64,000 nt of DNA from Chlorokybus atmophyticus (taxonomy: Eukaryota > Plantae > Mesostigma and Chlorokybus algae): contig RHPI01001616.1 in NCBI GenBank assembly GCA_009103225.1, positions 188,640 through 252,639 on the forward strand. Direction: 5' to 3'. Position numbers and translations under genes: made by a program. Positions 12,489 through 54,513 of the stretch are shown one piece after another; position 1 is the stretch's first letter; each line of letters begins with the position of its first letter. A model generated the notes under the pieces. It had not been told where the DNA came from. It saw only the letters and a program-made list of their open reading frames with translations, and did not search any database.

Positions 12489-15400
12489 ATGGCTGCGTGC
12501 GCGGCAATGGCGGCCGTGGCGCCCGCTGTGGTGGTGACTGCTGCAAGCAGCGCCGCCAGGCCCGGGCGGCCGGCGGCGGCCACTGCTGCTGCCTCCAGGC
12601 CGGCGGCGGCGTTCACTGAGTTCAGCGGGCTGCGTGCTGTGTCACGTGTCGACACTTGCGCCTCCTCCTCCTCCTCCCACGCCGCCACGCGTCCCGGCGC
12701 CGTACAGTGCGTCGCCACGGTAAGCGTCGTCGACGCCAGGCCTAGGGTTTTGCTTGCTGTTTGGTATCTTTTGCTTTGCCACTGTCACAAGCCCACATGC
12801 CACGCTTGCAAGACACTTGGCAGCTGCATGCAGATTGCAGCAAGAGCAAGAGCAAGAGCAAACACATTACAGCATAGGCTAGCATAGTCTGCCTAGCAAC
12901 TACTGTCTGCAATGACGCTGTCGTTTGTGTGCTCAAAAGTGTGGTATATGTGGTGTCAACTTATTTCTTGTGCACGCTTGTGCAGCCTGCAGCTCCCCCA
13001 TCAGCGAAGCCAGCTAAGCGCAGCAAGGTTGAGATCATCAAGGAGAACAGCGACTTCCTTCGACATCCTCTCTTAGAAGAGCTCGAGACGGAAGCTTCCA
13101 ACATCAGCGACGCCGCCGCGCAACTCATCAAGTTTCACGGCAGCTACCAGCAGGATGATCGAGAGAAGAGAACGTTCGGGAAGGGAAAGTACTACCAGTT
13201 CATGATGCGCACCAAGCAGCCGGCTGGCAAGGTATGATATTGCAAATATCATGGTCTACTGCCTTGTGGTTAAAGAAGCGCTCGCTTCCAACATGGCAAC
13301 ATGCTTTTACTCATGCGATGATGATGATGCCTTGCGGAAAATGTTTTTTGGTAGGAGCTTGTCCAGATATGAGCCTGCGCATACACACGCACGTGCACAT
13401 GTTTGCACACACGTGCAGACACATAAGCATGCACGCACGCATGCATACAAAAAAGTTTGTCTGGCAGGTTGACAACAAGTTGTACCTCACCATGGACGAC
13501 CTCGCTGACAAGTACGGCAACGGCACCTTGCGTCTTACTACCCGCCAGACATACCAACTCCACGGCGTCCTCAAGGAGGACATGAAGACCGTGTTCTCCA
13601 CCGTCATCAAGAACATGGGTTCCACCCTCGGCGCGTGTGGAGACCTCAACCGCAACGTGCTCGCGCCACCACCGCCGTACACCAACCGACCCGACTACGC
13701 TGCGGCAGTGAAAGTGGCAGAGCAGATAGCTGACTTGTTTGCACCACAAGTAAGTGCAGCTAGTATTGGTGCACACTCTATGTGCGTGTGTGCGTGCGTG
13801 TGTGGGCGCATGGGTGCAGTGTGTATGGTGTGTGTGTGCATATGTGGTAATGAAGCTAGCGCTCAACAAGTATTTCTTACTCAGGGCGGTGCTTATTACG
13901 ACGTGTGGCTCAATGGCGAGAAGTTCATCTCCTCACAGAAGGACGATCCCGAGGTCACCGACGTCCTCAACGACAACTCTCACGGCACCAACTTCGTCGG
14001 GTCTCCGGAGCCCATCTACGGCACGCAGTTCCTGCCACGCAAGTTCAAGGTGGCCGTCACGGTCCCTGGAGACAACTCCGTCGACCTGCTCACAAACGAC
14101 GTTGGCCTTGTTGTCATCAGCGATAGCAATGGCGAAGTGCAAGGCTATGATATATATGTAAGTGTGCGTTGTGTGTGTGTGCCCCGCGTGCATTCGCGTG
14201 TGTACATGTCGCGCGTGTACATGTCTTTGATTGTGCGTGTGTGCGTGCGTGACTGTATTGTTGCGTGTTGGCTTGCATCTGACTTGGTTGTAAGTTACTT
14301 TCATGTCATCAGTCTATGCACTGATGAAGCGGAGTGTCGTGCTGATTTGCTCACATTCTGATTTGTCTAGGTTGGTGGTGGCATGGGCAGGACGCACCGA
14401 GACGAGGAGACCTTTGCCCGTCTCGCCGAGCCCCTTGGCTACGTTCCCAAGGAGGACGTGTTGTACGCCATGAAGGCCATCATATGCACGCAGCGCGACT
14501 ACGGTCGGAGGGACGACCGCCGCCAGTCGAGAATGAAGTACCTCATTCACGATTGGGGGATTGAAAGGTTTAGAACGGTGGTGGAACAGTACTATGGGAA
14601 GAAGATTGAGGAGTTCAGGTATGATGCAAAGCTTGTGTGTTGCGTTGCACAGGAGTTGGCGGTTATGCGTGCATGTGCGTGCGTGCGCACATCTGTGTTG
14701 TGAGATTAATGTGCTTCATCCCAATGCAGGCCGCTGCCTAAGTGGGAGTTCAAGGATTTTCTTGGCTGGCACGAGCAGGGTGATGGCAAGCTGTTCTACG
14801 GCGTGCAGGTGTGTGGTCATGCCACTTGATGTTGGCCATTGGGTTGGGCAAGTCACCTTGCCACAGCTTAAACAATTGTTTTGTGACTGCAGGTTGAGAA
14901 CGGCAGGCTCAAGGGTGAGATGAAGCAGGCTCTGCGCAGGGTTGTGGAGCGCTACGAGCTTCCTGTGCGCATCACAGCGAACCAGAACCTCATTCTGTGT
15001 GACGTGTATCCCGCATGGAAGAGAGACATTGTGAACACTCTCAAGGTAAATGGGTAGGGTAGATTCATCTGCTTTGCTCAGTTGGTTGCAGGAGAGTGTA
15101 TTTGACAGTGTGAAGGTCGTATAGGTAAAGCGTTTGGTGTTGCACACTAGCCGTTGCTTACATCTTATCATTCACAGGCAGCTGATGTGAAGGATGTCTC
15201 GGAGGTGGATGACCTCGTGCGCAAGTCGATGGCGTGTCCCGCGCTTCCACTCTGCGGTCTGGCCATCGGCGAGGCCGAGCGCACGCTGCCTGATATCAAC
15301 AAGAGGCTGCGAACTCTGTTGACACAGGTATGATATATCAAATTATGGTGTGACATCTATAATATTGCATCATCAACACAACCACCCTTCCAGCCACAGT

Positions 15401-17187: not shown

Positions 17188-17230
17188 TGCACACACACAC
17201 ACACGCACACACACAGAGAGAGAGAGAGAC

Positions 17231-17291
<61 letters not shown>

Positions 17292-17538
17292 AAGAGAGCG
17301 AGAGAGCGAGAGCGCGAGAGAGCGAGAGCGCGAGAGAGCGAGAGCGCGAGAGCGAGAGCGCGAGCGCGAGCGCGAGAGCGAGAGCGCGAGAGCGAGAGCG
17401 AGAGCGAGAGCGAGAGCAAGCGAGAGCGAGAGCAAGCGAGAGCGCGAGAGCGCGAGAGAGCGAGAGCGAGAGAGCGAGAGCAAGAGCGAGAGCGAGAGCG
17501 AGAGCGAGAGCGAGAGAGAGCGAGAGAGAGCGAGAGAG

Positions 17539-17569
<31 letters not shown>
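17188..17569. repeat. Compound microsatellite (AC)n-(AG)n-(GAGAGC/GAGC)n-(AG)n
   Basis: Directly visible ~380-bp low-complexity tract. Confidence 0.95.
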
Positions 17570-17575
<6 letters not shown>

Positions 17576-30654: not shown

Positions 30655-34051
<3,397 letters not shown>

Positions 34052-41793: not shown

Positions 41794-44700
41794 ATGGCCA
41801 GTTGTCTGCAGCTTCCCCGCCTGCTGGCTTGCTCGTCTGGGGCCCTCCGCGTGCTGCGCTCCCGGACCACGCTGCCTCCGACGCCGCCGCTGCTGCTGCG
41901 CCAAAGGTAAGCTTGCCATGCTTGCCATGCCAATTGACACAACCATGGCCAGCCATTACAAGCATAATGCTTGTAGGCTATGCTCGAGCGCCAGCATGCC
42001 GCAAGAATTGTCAAACTGATAAGCGTGGCAAGCATGCTTGCGATTTTGGCTGGCCGGTCGTCAGCATGCTTGGCAATAGGCATGCGTCATGACCATGCTT
42101 GTCATGCCTCAAGCATGCTTGACGCATGCTTGTGTCTGGGATGGCCATGCTTGTGATGTATGGCATGCCCATACTACTCTTACAAACATGGCAAGCATGC
42201 TTGTAGGAGTGCTTGTTATCCAGCAGCATTGGATGAAGCATTGCTTGCAAACGCCATGAAGCTTGCTGCAAGCTCCAATTGTTAGCGTACACTCCCTTAA
42301 AACTGTCTGTCTGTGCAATTGTGTGTCTCGGCAGTGAGTCCCTCAGTTTGTTTGCGTCTGCGCCTCGCTTGCCAGCAGCCAGCGAATTTTCAAGGCAGCC
42401 CCTGCAAGTGAGTGAGCTCTGCTGTAACTTGTTGTTTGCTGCACACTGTGCTTGCTGGTTGGCTTGTGTGGAGCTTGAGCTGACAGCCATGGGTGTGTGC
42501 ATACTCTGTGTGTGTTTTGTTGTACTTTGTTCAGTAGAGCAGCAAGCAGTGGTTTCAGAGCGGATCTGCCAGGAGGTTTAAGCCCTTGGCAGCGGCGGTC
42601 GGCGGACCTGGAGGAGGGGGCGGAGCAGTAGGAGGGGGAGGGGGCGGAGGAGGAGGAGGAGGAGGAGGGCGTGGAGGAGGAGAGGGTTCTGATCAGCTTG
42701 GAGGCGGCAGATCTGAGTACGGCTGCTTTGGTGTGCTTTGCTGCATGCGTGCGTTGTGCAAGGGTGTGCATATGGTCCATACAATGTCAATGTTCAGTGC
42801 AATACAGCATTGTGTGTTACTGTAAGTTACTTTCAGCTCATGCTGTATCAGCACAATGCTGCTACCACATGCTCGAAGTACATGCATGTGGCACATTTCG
42901 TGTACGCGTATTGTACGATGAGAAGCAGCATTCGCTCACAGTCTCCAACCAGCCCAGAAGCCATAGCCATTGTCACCTTTCAACGCACAACACTATATAT
43001 TGCACAAGCAACGTGACCCATGAATTGCAAAACTTGGACAAGTTGTTGCTCGTGCAGTCACGAGTTGTGTGAGGCATCAGAGAAGCACTTATTCTGTCAA
43101 GGGTGTGTCTTTGTTGGGATTTCATTGTTCTCTGCCTACATCGTAATTCAACAATCTGTTCTTGCAGGCCCGGTGGCTGGTTTCTGCACGTGGGCAAGAT
43201 GATATTGCAAGCCTTGCTCTTCGCCGCAGCGGGGCTCGCCCTGTTTATAGCGGCAATACCTGCGTTGCTGTCGAGCCCATGGGCCGTGAACATACTGCTT
43301 TCGTACCTCAATAACACAATACCAGGTGAGCCGACGAGCTTGTGAAGGAGAGTTATACAACATGTCACAGGCTGATGTGTGTGCATGCGTATCAAAACTA
43401 TGAAGGCATTGCTGTATGGGGTGTTGATCACACGCATATGGACACGCATACACTCATGTACACACGTGCGCACACGCACACGCACACGCACACGCACACG
43501 CACATGCAAACATGTTGTCGCTGGCTATCATGCAGGTTCTATCAAGGTGGAGAAGGCGACCATATCATGGGGAGACCAGCTTAAGCTCTTCAACATTACT
43601 ATCTTCGGGCCCGATGGAGTAAAAGCTGCCACCATAGAGTCGATACAGACCGCAGCAAAGCTTTGGGAACTCGTCACACGCAGGAAGAGCCTAGGTACAA
43701 GAACTCAACATCAGACATGCATCATGTGATGATCAACACCTGTACGAAAATTACTTATGTTTACAGGTGGATCGGTGATCAAAAACCCTACGCTGGACCT
43801 GTCTTTGAACCTGGATGACCAGCCCAGGCTGCTGGCGGCCGTGTACGAGTCATCTGCGACGGCATCAAAGCCTCCAGCGAGCGAAACGCCGCCGCCGCCC
43901 ATGAAGCAGCAAACTGGCACGCTCCCACTTGTTGCCAACATCAACTTACCGGACGCACCCATCGTATTCCAGGTCTGTTCTCAAGTCCATGCCAGGGCTG
44001 TTGTCAACTATGCTATGCTCTGCTATGCTGTGCTATGCTAGTTGCATGGTATGCTCATGTTAACCTCCGCTCAGCTATGTTGGACGTATGTTGTGCTATG
44101 TCTCTATGCCATGCTATGCTAAGCCAAGCTATGCTCCACACCTCTATTGTGCTATGCATTGCCTTGGTTGAGTTGCTAGACGACGTAAGGGTTAGATGGG
44201 CGACTTCTCAAACCCCCAACAACGCTGGAGAGGGTGCCAATTAAGATTGAACGGCATGCAGACCACATGACGGGCAATTCCAACACGATGACCAACAAAG
44301 CACTCAAAGACCTGGCATATCGCCTCGGCGCTGAACTGGCCGAGATGATGGCTTATCATCTCGGCCACTTACTGCCGAGGTTATGAGCCAACTCTGACAG
44401 TACTTTGTACGTCGCGGTGTTGTCATTGCCCGTCATGTCGTCCGCGAGTTGCTCATTTCCCTTTCCACCCTTTTTAGCGTTGCAATAATTTCAGTGTGTC
44501 TGGACCCAGGTCACACTCTCGCAATGCTTGGCGTCTTTGATAGCATTGACTTGGAATGAACCGTTTCAGGGAGGCTCATTGATCATGCCGGTTGAAGCCA
44601 TCGATTGTCTAGGGGATGGTCCAGTGATCCTTGACGTGACAATTGGGCCGCCCGGGACGCAGCTTGAGGACGAGGCGGCGCATGTGAGCTCTGAGCTGTC

Positions 44701-46179
44701 GACGCAGGACAAAGCCATCGCCTGGTTCAAGAGCTGGCTTGGGTTTCGCCGGCCGCTGTTCGCGCGACTCTCGACCAAACACTCCAAGATGGAAGTCTCT
44801 GGAAGCATCGACTTTAGCGGGATCGTGTACACAGACAAGCCTGTGCGCGCAAAGGTACGAGCTGCATTGGCACTGACTACATTATGCGAGCTCGTGCAGG
44901 TGTCATGCTCCATGCGGTGTATTGTCAAACACTATCTGCATTCACTTGTTGTCCATGACCACACATAACAGGCTTGTCAATGCATGTTGGCGTTTATAAG
45001 CAGTGTCGGTTCCTCACACCTACCAACAGATCCACCAACTCACAAATATGTATGGGCTTGGTCTTGATGGTCATACAAGCCGTATCCTGTACATCTGTCT
45101 TGCCTTCTCCTTTTGCAGCAGGCTATTGATGCTCACAAAACCAAATCTGTGGTTGTGCGATGCAGCTGGACGTGACGACGCCTCTTTGTCGGACAGTCCT
45201 TGCGAAGGTCAATCCTTTGCTTTCAGATGCGGTCTCCGTGGACCCGCACTGGGGCGAGCAGATGCAGGTGTTGGTGAAGCCCGAGGGTGGGATGATCCCC
45301 TCCACCATGTACAAGGCCAGGATCCTGCCCATGCGGCTGGTCATCGAGCAGGGCAGTCTCATCAGCAACGCCCTCAACATGCTCAATGCCAAGTCGGCCG
45401 CACACGGGCCCACCACAACTATGATGACGTCCGCAGTCCACGCAGAGTATCACTCACAATCAGGACTTGTAACTTCCTCTCGCCTGGACGTGCGCGTGGC
45501 AGGTATGTTGGATGCATCTCATGATGGATGCATCGCATGTTCATGACCTGGTTGTGCATTGCAGTAACCAGGACTGAGTTGCTGTTAATTGTGGTGCAGA
45601 TGCGGTGCAGTTGGCGGCGTGGGGTGAGACCGACTTGAACACGAGGAAGATCAGCATGACGCTGGGAGTGCCAGCGTACTCGCTGCGGAGATGGACGGGC
45701 GTGAAGAACTTGCCCGAGGACTACGTCCTTCAGGTAAGGAATACATGCCCCTTACCTTGTCAAGTTGTACTTTTTCTCTAGTGACCGCTCAGCCCGACAC
45801 ACATTGTACAGAGCATCAAATGGTGTATGAGTGTATAGGTGCATCTGGGTGGGACTTTGGACCAGTACCGTGTGGACTGGGGAAAAGCAGCAAAGCAGGT
45901 GCTGGTTACTCCTTGCATGCTTTCATTATCTTGATGCACAGCATAACCAACCCTACAAAGCACATACGGTTGGGCACAACTGCCGGCGAATAACTACTTA
46001 CACAACTCCGTTTTACTTGCCAGATTGCTGGACTTGTGCTTAGAGGCGATGAGCGTCCGCGAAGTAACGACCTACTCGGGAACCTTCTCACTGCGGGAAA
46101 GATACTGGCGCCGTCCCTCGAGGAAGGCACGAAGGCACCCCCGCCCACTCTGCCTCACCCTTGGGAACAGGAGTACTAG
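41794..46179 (+). CDS. Uncharacterised AsmA/TamB-like protein, probably plastid-envelope; 11 exons
   Basis: All 11 GT-AG exons join in one frame: transit-peptide-like start, polyGly, TM helix (LQALLFAAAGLALFIAAIPALLSSPW), LNNTIPGSIKVEKATISW, beta-rich body, LAKVNPLL, SRLDVRVA|DAVQLAAWGETDL..MTLGVP..LPEDYVLQ|VHLGGTLD..IAGL..PPPTLPHPWE. The family assignment is from motif recall. Confidence 0.75.
41906..42260. repeat. Array of CAAGCATGCTTG/CATGCTTG palindromic units in intron 1 of the AsmA-like gene
   Basis: More than 10 (G/C)CATGCTTG or CAAGCATG units in ~350 bp. Confidence 0.75.
44005..44160. repeat. Degenerate (CTATG)n satellite in intron
   Basis: ctatgctatgctctgctatgctgtgctatgctag..ctatgccatgctatgctaagccaagctatg. 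Confidence 0.8.
44220..44482 (+). ncRNA. Long imperfect intronic fold-back; candidate pre-miRNA/hpRNA (or old MITE)
   Basis: 84/83-nt arms (44266-44349; 44355-44437) around a 5-nt loop, plus a 17-bp basal helix (44220-44236 with 44466-44482). Symmetric mismatches, G:U pairs, a single bulge. Confidence 0.55.
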
Positions 46180-47849: not shown

Positions 47850-49159
47850 CTACCGTCCGCGGCCACGACCACGGCCACGGCCACGACCCCTGCCCCTTCC
47901 AACAGGCCGGCCTGCAAGCAAACAAACACTTCAGATCACTCGCACACGCGCGCGCACCAAACAACATGCGAGAATCATACACGCATCTCAACACTTACCA
48001 GGTGCTTCTTTCTTTGGCTTGATCTTGGGTGTATCATCGATGAGCAGCGTGTCCAAGTTGATGCTGTCCGGGAGAATGTAGTAGCGGATGTTGCTGCCGC
48101 GCACGCTGAGGTGGTCTAGAGATATCGGGTTCTTGCCTTTGGGTGTAAGCTTGACTGTTTTCAAGTGCGTGTTCATGCTGATGTCCACACCTGAAAACAC
48201 ACGCGCACATGTAAGGAAGAAGAAAGACGTGTACAAGAGAAGTAGCCATAGTAAACCACCTTGACGCAAGCAACTCACCCATTATCGTCCCGTGCACAAC
48301 TGTGCCATTTTTGAGCTCGATTACAACTGTCTCATTGTTCAGCTTCATGAGAAACCTGCAAGAAAGCGCAGTGTGAGATTGAAGCCATTGGCATAAGCGC
48401 GATGCACGCAAAGCTTTGATATCCTGTACACAACAAATGTGCAACTCCCACGCATGCACTGGTTGCAGCCTGCATGTCTCCGCGGGTAGAGACGCATATA
48501 CCAATAGAAGCATGCAAGAAGAAATACACACACCGCTCAACCAGTGCAAGATCGTTGCTGTTGACCAAGTGCGAATAGGCTGTCTGACTACTAATCACAA
48601 TTGCATGCACTGCTGCTTTATGGTAGAAGCAAAGTCCACCAGCAAGTGCACTCTGGCAGTAACTAACCGAAAGCTACAGTGAGTAATACTTGCAGAAAAA
48701 CGGCTTTGTGCCAGTCATGAGGCAGCCAACACACAAGCGCAAACGGGCGACGGCAGGTTGCAGCCTATTGACAACAACATGTCAAGCTTTGCAACCACCC
48801 TTTCATACATCAACAGAGACCCCACGCACCAGTGCTGCAGCCGACGCGCGTTAGCGCCACATGTAATGAAGCACCATGCCATGCGCAAATGCAGATGTCG
48901 TAAACAGTACAAATATGCAAACACAGAATCAATCAACAAGCATCTAAGGGCCCACCCTGACAGCTGTGAAGATGCAAGCATGTCACACAGGCACACCAAT
49001 AAGTCAAGTTTATCAGCAAAACGCTTGCGACAACAGTGCTTATTAGTCATCAGATTGCGCAGCTGGGGGGAATGTAACCCAATGCCTGATGTCAAACTAA
49101 AAGCGCTTTTGCATGCACACAATCTGGTTGGAAAAGCTTTCTCACCTGACAAGCTTCAT
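47850..49159 (-). CDS. SmD1: Small nuclear ribonucleoprotein Sm D1, 4 coding exons
   Basis: MKLV|[26 protein letters not shown]|[34 protein letters not shown]..|[14 protein letters not shown]. Confidence 0.97.
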
Positions 49160-52500: not shown

Positions 52501-54513
52501 AGTGTTAGTCAAGCAGATTGACCTGCCATTCAAGGGACCGTGTTCACATGCGGCGCGATGACGATTGTGTTTGTGTCGTCCTCTCCCCAGGTTGAGAACC
52601 GCAAGCAGACGCGGTTGCAGCTGCTGCGTTTCAACCCGTACACGGGCGCGCGCAGCTTGCTCCTGGAGGAGCGGAACGACACGTGGATTAACCTGCACGA
52701 CTGCTTCACCCCCTTGCACAAGGCCCCCGGCGAGCTGGCCAACGGCTTCGTCTGGGCCAGCGAACGCACGGGATTCCGACACTTGTACGCCTACACCGCG
52801 GCCGGCAAGCTGCTTGGAAATCTAACGGCCGGCGATTGGATGGTGGAAAGCGTGGCAGGTGAGGACACGTGTTCTGCTTGCGTGTGCGCATGCACGCGAG
52901 TTTGCGCGCGCGTGCGTGTGTGCATGTTGTGTATTTGAATTAGAGTGTCTGTGTTGTGCGTGCAGGTTTGGATGAAGGAGCAGGGTTGATATACTTCATG
53001 GGCACTTGCGACAGCGCGCTCGAGACGCACTTGTACTCTTGTCCCCTCACACCTTGCACTTCAGGCACGCCTCCCCCACCACAGCGATTGACGCAGGTTT
53101 GCGCCCATTGCACGTACACATGTCACAACGATGGTTGCAGGCATGCGCACACCCATGCGCACAGGCACAGCGTGCATATGTGCTGCACATACGCACACGT
53201 GCACGTGGTGCAGTTGATTGGCAGGTATAACCTGGTTGCTTCTTGTGACAACGTGTGTTGGATGCACAGGGCAGTGGTCGACACGTGGTGATCGTGGACC
53301 ACGCGCTGCGCCGCTTTGTAGATGTGTACGATTCGTTGGGGCAGCCGCCGCTCGTCACGCTGCGCATGCTGGAAGACGGGCGCGAGGTTGTTCCCATTTT
53401 TGTACCCCAGACCCCCAACCCGCGCGCGTCACGCCTGCGGCTCGACCCGCCACGCCTCGTGTCCATACCCGCTGGTCGGCACGGCATTGTACTCTATGGG
53501 GCCGTCTACCGACCAGACACTGATGTCCACGGCCCAGGTGCATGATTGTTTTAGTTGTTGTCGTCGTTTTTCTTGTGGTGCTGTATTGTGGGGTTGAGTG
53601 TGACCATGAGTAGGAATTGGCTCATTATATGTGTTCCTGAGCAGGTCCCTACAAGACGATTGTTAGTGTATATGGGGGGCCCCGAGTCCAGGCAGTGTGC
53701 AACTCATGGATCATGACGGTGGACATGCGTGCGCAGTACTTGCGGTCTCGAGGCTATCTTGTTTGGAAGGTACACGCATAAGTTGCAGTTTGTCTGTGAG
53801 GGAGCCTATCTCATAAACTATGGTCAATCACTTACATGAATAGCATGCTGCTGTCACTGCATGCTCCTTGCTTGACACTTGCATTGACAAGGGCTGCTGG
53901 TGTCCGTGCTTGTGAACAATGTATGAGTAGCCCAACCCTTGTGTTTGTGGCTTGGCAGTTGGACAACAGGGGGAGTTCAAGAAGGGGTTTGTCATTTGAG
54001 AGCGCCATTAAGCACAAGTTGGGCAGCGTGGACGTGCACGACCAAGAGACAGGTCTGAAGTGGCTCCTTGAGCAGGAGAGGCTTGTGGACCCGACACGCA
54101 TGGGCGTGTACGGGTGGAGCTATGGCGGGTACCTTGCTGCAATGTGTCTATGCAAACTCCCGCACATGTTCAAGTCGGCCGTGGCGGGCGCGCCCGTCAC
54201 GTCGTGGGATGGGTACGACACCCACTACACCGAGCAGTACATGGGCACGCCGGGGGCCAACACGACGGCCTACCAGGAGAGCAGCGTCATGCATCACGTG
54301 GCCGCCATGCGCGGGAAGCTCCTCCTCGTGCATGGGATGATTGATGAGAACGTGCACTTCCGACACACGTGTCGACTCGTCAACGCCCTCAATGCCGCAT
54401 CCAAACACTACGAGCTTCTCACCTTCCCAGATGAGCGACACATGCCCCGCAGCCTGAAAGACCGCGTGTACATGGAAGAGCGCATGTTTGAGTTCTTCTC
54501 TAGAACAGTGTAA
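49545..54513 (+). CDS. Dipeptidyl peptidase IV/8/9-like S9B serine peptidase, 12 exons
   Basis: DPPIV beta-propeller motifs ([15 protein letters not shown]|[33 protein letters not shown]); catalytic [16 protein letters not shown] and FPDERH; [13 protein letters not shown]. Confidence 0.95.

Follow-up and report, generated by a model that had tools for sequence, protein, structure and literature searches.

What kind of protein is encoded by the spliced, intron-bearing nuclear gene at positions 41794-46179 (+ strand) of a 64,000-nucleotide (nt) stretch of contig RHPI01001616.1, the whole of which is called the window here? The contig comes from Chlorokybus atmophyticus, an early-diverging streptophyte alga, and the gene had been read from its letters as coding for a plastid-type AsmA/TamB-like protein with a Toc75-like polyglycine and a similarity to Chlamydiae (the original prediction). 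On balance, we favour the reading that this is a nuclear gene for a short member of the AsmA-like lipid-transfer superfamily, a groove-type envelope protein derived from the Planctomycetota-Verrucomicrobiota-Chlamydiota (PVC) group of bacteria, and that the polyglycine lies in an intron.

Three-frame reading placed the start codon (ATG) at 41794 and the stop codon (TAG) at 46177-46179; these positions, and every peptide string quoted in the original prediction, were recovered unchanged. An 11-exon open reading frame (ORF) of about 550 amino acids (aa) had been described. A stop-free 11-exon join with GT-AG borders throughout does exist, as confirmed by three-frame reading and a border check, but it encodes 615 aa and its exons 2 and 3 lack independent support. 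Exon 1 spliced straight to exon 4 was in frame and gave, residue for residue, a deposited 535-aa protein, P0001, which a word search identified as eukprot jgi/Chlat1/2778/Chrsp187S02909 from C. atmophyticus (Chlat1 2778). The exact identity of this nine-exon join with P0001 gives independent support to nine exons but not to exons 2 and 3, which fall inside the 1261-nt first intron of the deposited model. Exon 8 alone, used as a phmmer query against 1.84 billion cluster representatives, returned P0001 at 100% identity. An exact look-up of P0001 on contigs, made in search of a transcript contig, found none on record. No family matches were found among antisense and intronic ORFs within the gene, and Pfam and NCBIfam scans of single exons gave no match. 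The nine supported exons are given below with the evidence for each; A8 denotes a 16-sequence profile of the N-terminal (N) module and A9 a 23-sequence profile of the C-terminal (C) module.

41794-41906, + strand: exon 1, start codon and presequence (37 codons plus 2 nt), rich in Arg, Ser, Leu and Pro, with no Asp or Glu; in P0001.
43168-43325, + strand: exon 4 (deposited exon 2), transmembrane anchor and start of the N module (P..LSS, ..N..IPG); Kyte-Doolittle, AlphaFold2 helix, alignment A8.
43536-43694, + strand: exon 5, completes the chorein-N-like N module (..ISW.., SLW); A8 matched P0024 in hhalign (97.2%), sub-threshold Pfam DUF748.
43767-43972, + strand: exon 6, variable linker and beta region containing a loop rich in Pro and low in confidence; AlphaFold2 confidence.
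44570-44854, + strand: exon 7, middle beta strands, variable and differing in length across the family; AlphaFold2 and family alignment.
45166-45502, + strand: exon 8, beginning of the C module (LAKVNPLL ... SRLDVRVA); phmmer matches to P0001 and algal relatives, alignment A9.
45600-45733, + strand: exon 9, core of the C module (LAAWGETDL ... DYVLQ); R, D, W and G invariant in algae and bacteria.
45839-45898, + strand: exon 10, last strand, GGTLDQYRVDWGKAAKQ; aligns with the Chlamydiota motif GTL(E/D)DPK(V/I)D and with the C-terminus of P0024.
46024-46179, + strand: exon 11, C-terminal helices, PPPTLPHPW tail and stop codon; PPP...PW conservation, tail of low confidence in AlphaFold2.

The architecture of the encoded protein agreed with what had been described. 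Its first 46 residues contain no Asp or Glu, six Arg and seven Ser or Thr, and directly precede a single hydrophobic helix, which was evident both as a helix in the AlphaFold2 model and as a Kyte-Doolittle 19-residue maximum of 2.53 at residue 54 of P0001. Of the five other full-length members tested, four had a comparable maximum and the pedinophyte protein P0014 a weak one. The AlphaFold2 model (residues 44-535, from a 14-row alignment) reached a mean predicted local distance difference test score (pLDDT) of 82.4 and a predicted template-modelling score (pTM) of 0.75. It consists of a long N-terminal helix (model residues 2-29), 24 strands with short helices between them, and a pair of helices at the C-terminus. 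Strand makes up 44% of the body, in line with the beta-rich body proposed earlier, and hydrophobicity alternates strongly within the strands, which are amphipathic. Confidence fell below a pLDDT of 50 at model residues 129-140, the Pro-rich loop of exon 6. The C-terminal PPPTLPHPWE was present as described, and the PPPTLPHPW tail was disordered or of low confidence in the model.

To place the protein in a superfamily, we compared it and its homologues with curated families. Three sub-threshold Pfam matches were seen, each to the beginning of a model from the AsmA-like clan and each in register immediately after the transmembrane helix: DUF748 for P0001 residues 55-212 (E=0.022), YhdP for the Chara homologue P0005 (E=0.19) and AsmA for the Phycisphaeraceae homologue L006 (E=1.4e-4). 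A family profile search recovered two annotated bacterial proteins, the planctomycete DUF748 protein P0023 and the YhdP protein P0024, the latter scoring 46.6 bits against Pfam YhdP (PF13116; gathering cut-off 46). With hhalign, family alignment A2 matched the N-terminus of P0023 at 96.5%. A8 matched the N-terminus of P0024 (residues 18-128) at 97.2% (E=2.8e-11, 111 columns), and A9 matched residues 824-992 of its 1004 at 92.5% (E=4.8e-7, 165 columns). Both the N and the C module are therefore collinear with a PF13116 member. The UniRef label of the Myrmecia member is 'DUF3971 domain-containing', and DUF3971 is a YhdP domain (bioRxiv 10.1101/2023.10.05.561070).

These comparisons support the Chlorokybus protein as a divergent AsmA-like superfamily member on the YhdP side that is not an orthologue of TamB or TIC236; the placement follows from the match of both ends to P0024, the weakness of the TamB match and the lack of any match to the TamB C-terminus. 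Of the AsmA/TamB-like assignment made earlier, the N-terminal anchor, the beta-rich body and the superfamily stood, and the nearest curated family proved to be YhdP/DUF3971 rather than TamB. By sequence, the subfamily is one that was previously uncurated. Literature searches found no description of a short AsmA-like family of Chlorokybus and Chlamydiota.

With the YhdP family (PF13116, formerly DUF3971, plus AsmA_C) the Chlorokybus protein shares the N-terminal transmembrane anchor, the chorein-N-like N module, the C module collinear with P0024, and an all-beta body with C-terminal helices. It differs in length, at 535 aa being less than half of E. coli YhdP (1266 aa), and in scoring below the Pfam threshold. 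The algal/PVC family carries a conserved PPPTTxPxPW tail, which P0024 does not have, and its known members come from green algae and PVC bacteria. In size the protein is similar to E. coli AsmA (617 aa), which with YicH and YhjG belongs to PF05170, and it shares the N-terminal anchor and beta architecture of these proteins; the sub-threshold AsmA match was that of its Phycisphaeraceae relative.

Homologues were found in both green algae and bacteria. The exon-8 search returned 16 proteins at E<=1e-3; two of these, P0002 and P0013, are probably spurious repeat matches. Named sources were Chlorokybus, Chara braunii, [Myrmecia] bisecta and Pedinophyceae sp. YPF-701, and a further match lay on a compact eukaryotic contig beside Prp19, ribosomal L30 and histone genes. 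The remaining matches were exon-sized fragments on environmental eukaryotic contigs. No named land plant was among the exon-8 matches, and the eukaryotic members found were confined to Viridiplantae. The exon-8-like fragments (62-135 aa; P0004, P0006-P0012, P0016 and L026 6001-6408) sit on contigs where their ORFs run into intron-like sequence, which suggests further uncatalogued carriers of algal or plant lineage.

On the bacterial side, a full-length word search gave as its best non-algal match P0017, a 637-aa hypothetical protein from a metagenome-assembled genome (MAG) of Chlamydiia (E=6e-6 database-wide). It lies on a bacterial contig, adjoining YchF and an aminotransferase, and is collinear with the algal protein through the transmembrane segment and N module, the C module and a PPPPTSDVPW tail. 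P0017 alone, used as a locus-search query, found no genome. A scan of prokaryotes with degenerate peptide patterns, at one genome per species, added proteins of 1138 and 485 aa from two Chlamydiota MAGs and one of ~1576 aa from a Phycisphaeraceae MAG, and a metagenome scan added 16 loci of low to medium GC content, whose full-length members all terminate in PPPTT[NS]P[LF]PW. The closest prokaryotic relatives found were accordingly Chlamydiae (three Chlamydiota MAGs), together with the one Phycisphaeraceae MAG. The N and C modules are common to all the bacterial homologues, the 16 metagenome loci included.

The conserved C module reads R.D...L..WG...GTxxxPxxD, its R, D, W and G being invariant across algae and bacteria, and PPP...PW is kept in most full-length members, including Chlorokybus, Chara, the pedinophyte and the bacterial proteins. 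Family lengths range from ~485 to ~1576 aa, with conserved ends and a variable middle, a pattern typical of AsmA-like proteins. Four motifs had been likened to Chlamydiae proteins in the original prediction. The likeness is real, since all four are visible, and collinear, in alignments of Chlamydiota proteins; the closest example is DDYVLKVPVKGTLDDPKVDMSKAAAKILAL in the Chlamydiae protein L005, corresponding to EDYVLQVHLGGTLDQYRVDWGKAAKQIAGL in Chlorokybus. After PPPTTxPxPW, most bacterial members continue with an acidic or polar spacer and a basic amphipathic end (..GASSLLKKLFR or ..EASKLIKDLLK), as at the C-termini of L009-L023 (for example L012 2890-3549 and L020 1570-2229). The algal proteins do not have this end, which may be a membrane-binding helix.

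Two trees were built, one from the N and C blocks (9 rows) and one from the C block (23 rows). The algae, whose members are Chlorokybus, Chara, Myrmecia, the pedinophyte and a picoeukaryote, formed one clade in both (support 99/98 for N+C and 100/99 for the C block). Inside this clade the two named chlorophytes, Myrmecia and the pedinophyte, clustered separately from the streptophytes, a pattern that vertical descent within Viridiplantae would produce. All metagenome rows fell with the three named Chlamydiota on one side (83/79), with the planctomycete, the only non-chlamydial named bacterium in the trees, apart from them. Cyanobacteria were not represented, as none were found: no cyanobacterial match appeared in the exon-8 search of 1.84 billion proteins, in two full-length and profile word searches, or in the species-genome scan. 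Judged from these sequences, transfer from the PVC group to the green lineage is the simplest reading, and the gene would have entered from a PVC-group bacterium before the chlorophyte/streptophyte split. An earlier survey of chlamydia-affiliated genes lists 'hypothetical protein pc0324' only in Protochlamydia and Viridiplantae (Becker et al. 2008, Table 1 no. 32, PMC2490706). This phyletic pattern matches that of the short AsmA-like family, to which pc0324 may belong.

The mechanism we propose is modelled on the bacterial proteins. YhdP and other AsmA-like proteins have an inner-membrane anchor and a hydrophobic groove and transfer phospholipids, and the helices at the C-terminus of YhdP are needed and touch the outer membrane (bioRxiv 10.1101/2023.10.05.561070; PMC10345924). 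By analogy, the algal protein would be imported into the plastid, or less probably another organelle, and its transmembrane helix would anchor it in the inner envelope. Within the intermembrane space, the beta sheet is predicted to form a hydrophobic groove to carry glycerolipid acyl chains, and the C-terminal helices, the PPPT..PW tail or both may dock on the outer envelope or on a partner. With ~24 strands and ~390 to ~490 groove residues, the protein is probably too short to bridge the envelope alone, like E. coli AsmA or TamB without TamA; its 535 aa compare with about 1260 aa for a YhdP-type span of the envelope. A more far-reaching version, which we hold only tentatively, is that green algae keep a second AsmA-like lipid conduit in the plastid envelope, independent of TIC236, inherited from a chlamydial or other PVC partner of early Archaeplastida, equipped with the PPPTTxPxPW docking tail, and lost or diverged beyond recognition in land plants.

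Several results weigh against reading the gene as one for a PVC-derived, groove-type AsmA-like protein. No Pfam or NCBIfam model scored above its cut-off for any of the eight proteins scanned (P0001, P0003, P0005, P0014, P0015, P0017, L004 and L005). The hhalign comparisons gave no match to E. coli AsmA or to the N-terminus of E. coli YhdP, and at best E=0.09 for the YhdP C-terminus. Searching PDB sequences with hmmsearch returned nothing for A2, and noise plus TamB at E=1.5 for A8. In Foldseek searches of the PDB, the algal model had no match at E<=1e-3. The order of its matches leans the other way, with the Vps13 chorein-N fragment 6cbc first (E=0.027), LPD-3 4th and TamB 11th, at TM-scores of at most 0.22. 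A second AlphaFold2 model, of the 1138-aa Chlamydiales homologue (pLDDT 78.8), matched LptD, ApoB100, teneurins and LPD-3 at TM-scores of at most 0.16 and a root-mean-square deviation above 27 Å; these matches reflect generic long beta sheets. No conserved neighbourhood or partner gene was seen at the four bacterial loci examined; the genes around them were YchF plus an aminotransferase, kinases plus a phosphatase, GlmS, and DnaK. In both trees the algae stood beside the chlamydial group and were not nested inside it. The chlamydial affinity foreseen earlier held in that the best non-algal match was P0017. A specifically chlamydial origin was not demonstrated, since the algal clade lies beside the chlamydial one and the family occurs in a planctomycete too. 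The sampling of cyanobacteria, red algae, glaucophytes and land plants came from one exon-8 search and from scans limited to patterns.

The Foldseek ranking invites comparison with the eukaryotic repeating beta-groove (RBG) or bridge-like lipid-transfer proteins (VPS13, ATG2, BLTP1/LPD-3), given the first place of the Vps13 fragment and the 4th of LPD-3. Those matches were not significant (E >=0.027), however, and the proteins have no sequence-level relation to the algal protein, are cytosolic and are far larger.

An alternative source of the gene deserves most attention among the competing explanations: it may have come from the cyanobacterial endosymbiont or from another bacterium with undetected homologues, or it may have moved into Chlamydiae from an alga. 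When the tree is rooted on the planctomycete, the algae are sister to the chlamydial group, and branching among the bacteria was poorly supported (47-86%). The bacterial searches were confined to degenerate peptide patterns, and P0024, a bacterial relative with no assigned phylum, shows that wider kin exist. On the other hand, the only named bacterial members were the three Chlamydiota and one Planctomycetota, no cyanobacterial match was obtained in the scans made, and the spread of the bacterial members in length (~485 to ~1576 aa) and their deep branches argue against a recent gain from algae. We regard such a source as a real possibility, though the less probable one.

The protein could also be AsmA-like but serve mitochondria, or some other setting with two membranes, and not the plastid envelope. 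Mitochondrial and plastid presequences of green algae are hard to distinguish, the exon-1 presequence is rich in Arg and Leu, and mitochondria likewise descend from diderm bacteria. That the family was found, among eukaryotes, in Viridiplantae only speaks against this location, as does the observation that most chlamydia-affiliated Archaeplastida genes of bacterial type encode plastid proteins (Becker et al. 2008, PMC2490706). We consider a location outside the plastid envelope doubtful.

TIC236 is the known AsmA-like protein of chloroplasts, and TamB and TIC236 bind Omp85 partners (PMC10345924). A TamB/TIC236-like strut, spanning the periplasm or intermembrane space and coupled to Omp85 for protein insertion or import, was weighed against a lipid conduit. 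The Chlorokybus protein shares the superfamily and the topology of TamB and TIC236 (an inner-membrane anchor with beta structure in the intermembrane space), A8 gave a weak but in-register match to residues 1-69 of E. coli TamB (E=2.5e-4; E=1.5 for TamB in the PDB), and the conserved, disordered PPPT..PW tail resembles a partner-docking motif. Against a strut, the DUF490/TamB model (PF04357) had no match at E<=10, A9 against the C-terminus of E. coli TamB reached 0.1%, both ends of the protein match a YhdP-type protein, and no Omp85 gene was adjacent at the four bacterial loci. Our results agree with the earlier view that the protein is distinct from TIC236: it is far shorter, about a quarter of the size of TIC236, and shows no DUF490 signal, this distinction being drawn from domain content and length. 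An Omp85-coupled strut is unlikely.

The polyglycine raises a separate alternative, namely that the 11-exon model is the true mRNA and that a Toc75-type envelope-sorting or stop signal lies between transit peptide and transmembrane helix. The glycine run belongs to the second of two candidate exons, neither of which is part of P0001.

42335-42407, + strand: exon 2 of the original prediction, a candidate in intron 1 of the deposited model; open, GT-AG, G+C content at third codon positions (GC3) 0.58; absent from P0001, openness at chance level.
42550-42716, + strand: exon 3 of the original prediction, a candidate with the polyglycine; GC3 0.42, purine-rich acceptor; absent from P0001.

Both candidates are open, in phase and bounded by GT-AG with good donors (CAA|gtgagt, TGA|gtacgg), their non-Gly residues resemble a transit peptide, and the 1261-nt first intron, if undivided, would be the longest of the gene. 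In the 11-exon model, the glycine run follows a transit-peptide-like stretch, as it does in Toc75. The run is, however, encoded by a (GGA)n microsatellite of 24 copies at 42610-42682, as identified by TRF, and similar GGA/CCT arrays are present elsewhere in the window. The GC3 of exon 3 is the lowest of all exons (exons 4-11, 0.60-0.89). Enumeration showed that the 1261-nt interval admits 213 single-exon and 45,189 two-exon AG..GT insertions that are open and in frame. GGA repeats are open in all frames, and with that many equally valid alternatives the openness of exons 2 and 3 is no evidence that they are exons. The deposited model leaves both out, and exon 1 by itself supplies an acid-free presequence immediately before the transmembrane helix. 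No glycine run precedes the transmembrane helix in P0005, P0014 or P0015, nor in P0003, which begins at that helix; polyglycine is absent from the Chara, Myrmecia, pedinophyte and picoeukaryote homologues. Toc75, moreover, is an Omp85 barrel, whereas the Chlorokybus protein is helix-anchored and AsmA-like.

The Toc75 analogy is thus unsupported, because the run is a microsatellite in the deposited intron, is absent from the homologues and, as an exon, does not exceed chance. Most likely, the polyglycine is a GGA microsatellite within the intron and lies outside the protein, and we think it quite improbable that the 11-exon model is the mRNA.

Two other repeats were observed in the introns of the gene. 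In intron 1, the palindromic decamer AAGCATGCTT occurs three times (42030, 42111 and 42193) at a spacing of ~81 nt and nowhere else in the window, where 0.14 occurrences would be expected by chance. It lies amid many GCATGC-containing units that form a degenerate tandem repeat (41911-42230) just upstream of candidate exon 2. In intron 4, between the transmembrane exon and exon 5, there is a (CGCACA)n microsatellite at 43469-43508.

An outer-membrane beta-barrel, or an LptD-like protein, in place of an open groove is very improbable: LptD chains did top the Foldseek list of the 1138-aa Chlamydiales homologue (E=2.5e-5, prob 0.92) and alternating strand hydrophobicity would fit a barrel too, but those alignments superpose poorly, as noted above, the transmembrane helix and N module point to inner-membrane-anchored AsmA-like proteins, helices lie between strand groups, and the disordered, non-aromatic C-terminal tail has no beta-signal.

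Elsewhere in the window, exon-sized ORFs at 13234-14358 (+), 53836-54510 (+) and 48037-48549 (-) matched nitrite/sulfite reductase, prolyl oligopeptidase S9 and, weakly, LSM domains, respectively; the ORFs neighbouring the locus are ordinary eukaryotic nuclear genes. The largest simple repeat of the window is a 356-nt (AG)n microsatellite at 17215-17570. A 271-nt homopolymer C run with one N at 32154-32424, which has normal flanks, is most likely an assembly or scaffolding artefact and not biology.

The bulk crossing of glycerolipids between the envelope membranes is only partly explained by the TGD system. A separately derived small protein of AsmA/YhdP type, present in early-diverging streptophytes and in chlorophytes, is a concrete candidate for envelope studies. 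The negative outcome matters as well, in that what strikes the eye as a Toc75-like polyglycine most likely comes from a microsatellite within an intron. On the bacterial side, a variable-length family with a PPPTTxPxPW tail, captured by no Pfam or NCBIfam model, is new to curation. As the family was found in Chlamydiota, Planctomycetota and green algae only, the chlamydia-affiliated list used in the debate on plastid origin gains a putative envelope-biogenesis gene. If green algae do keep a second envelope conduit of this kind, the chlamydial contribution to plastid establishment would be tied directly to envelope lipid traffic.

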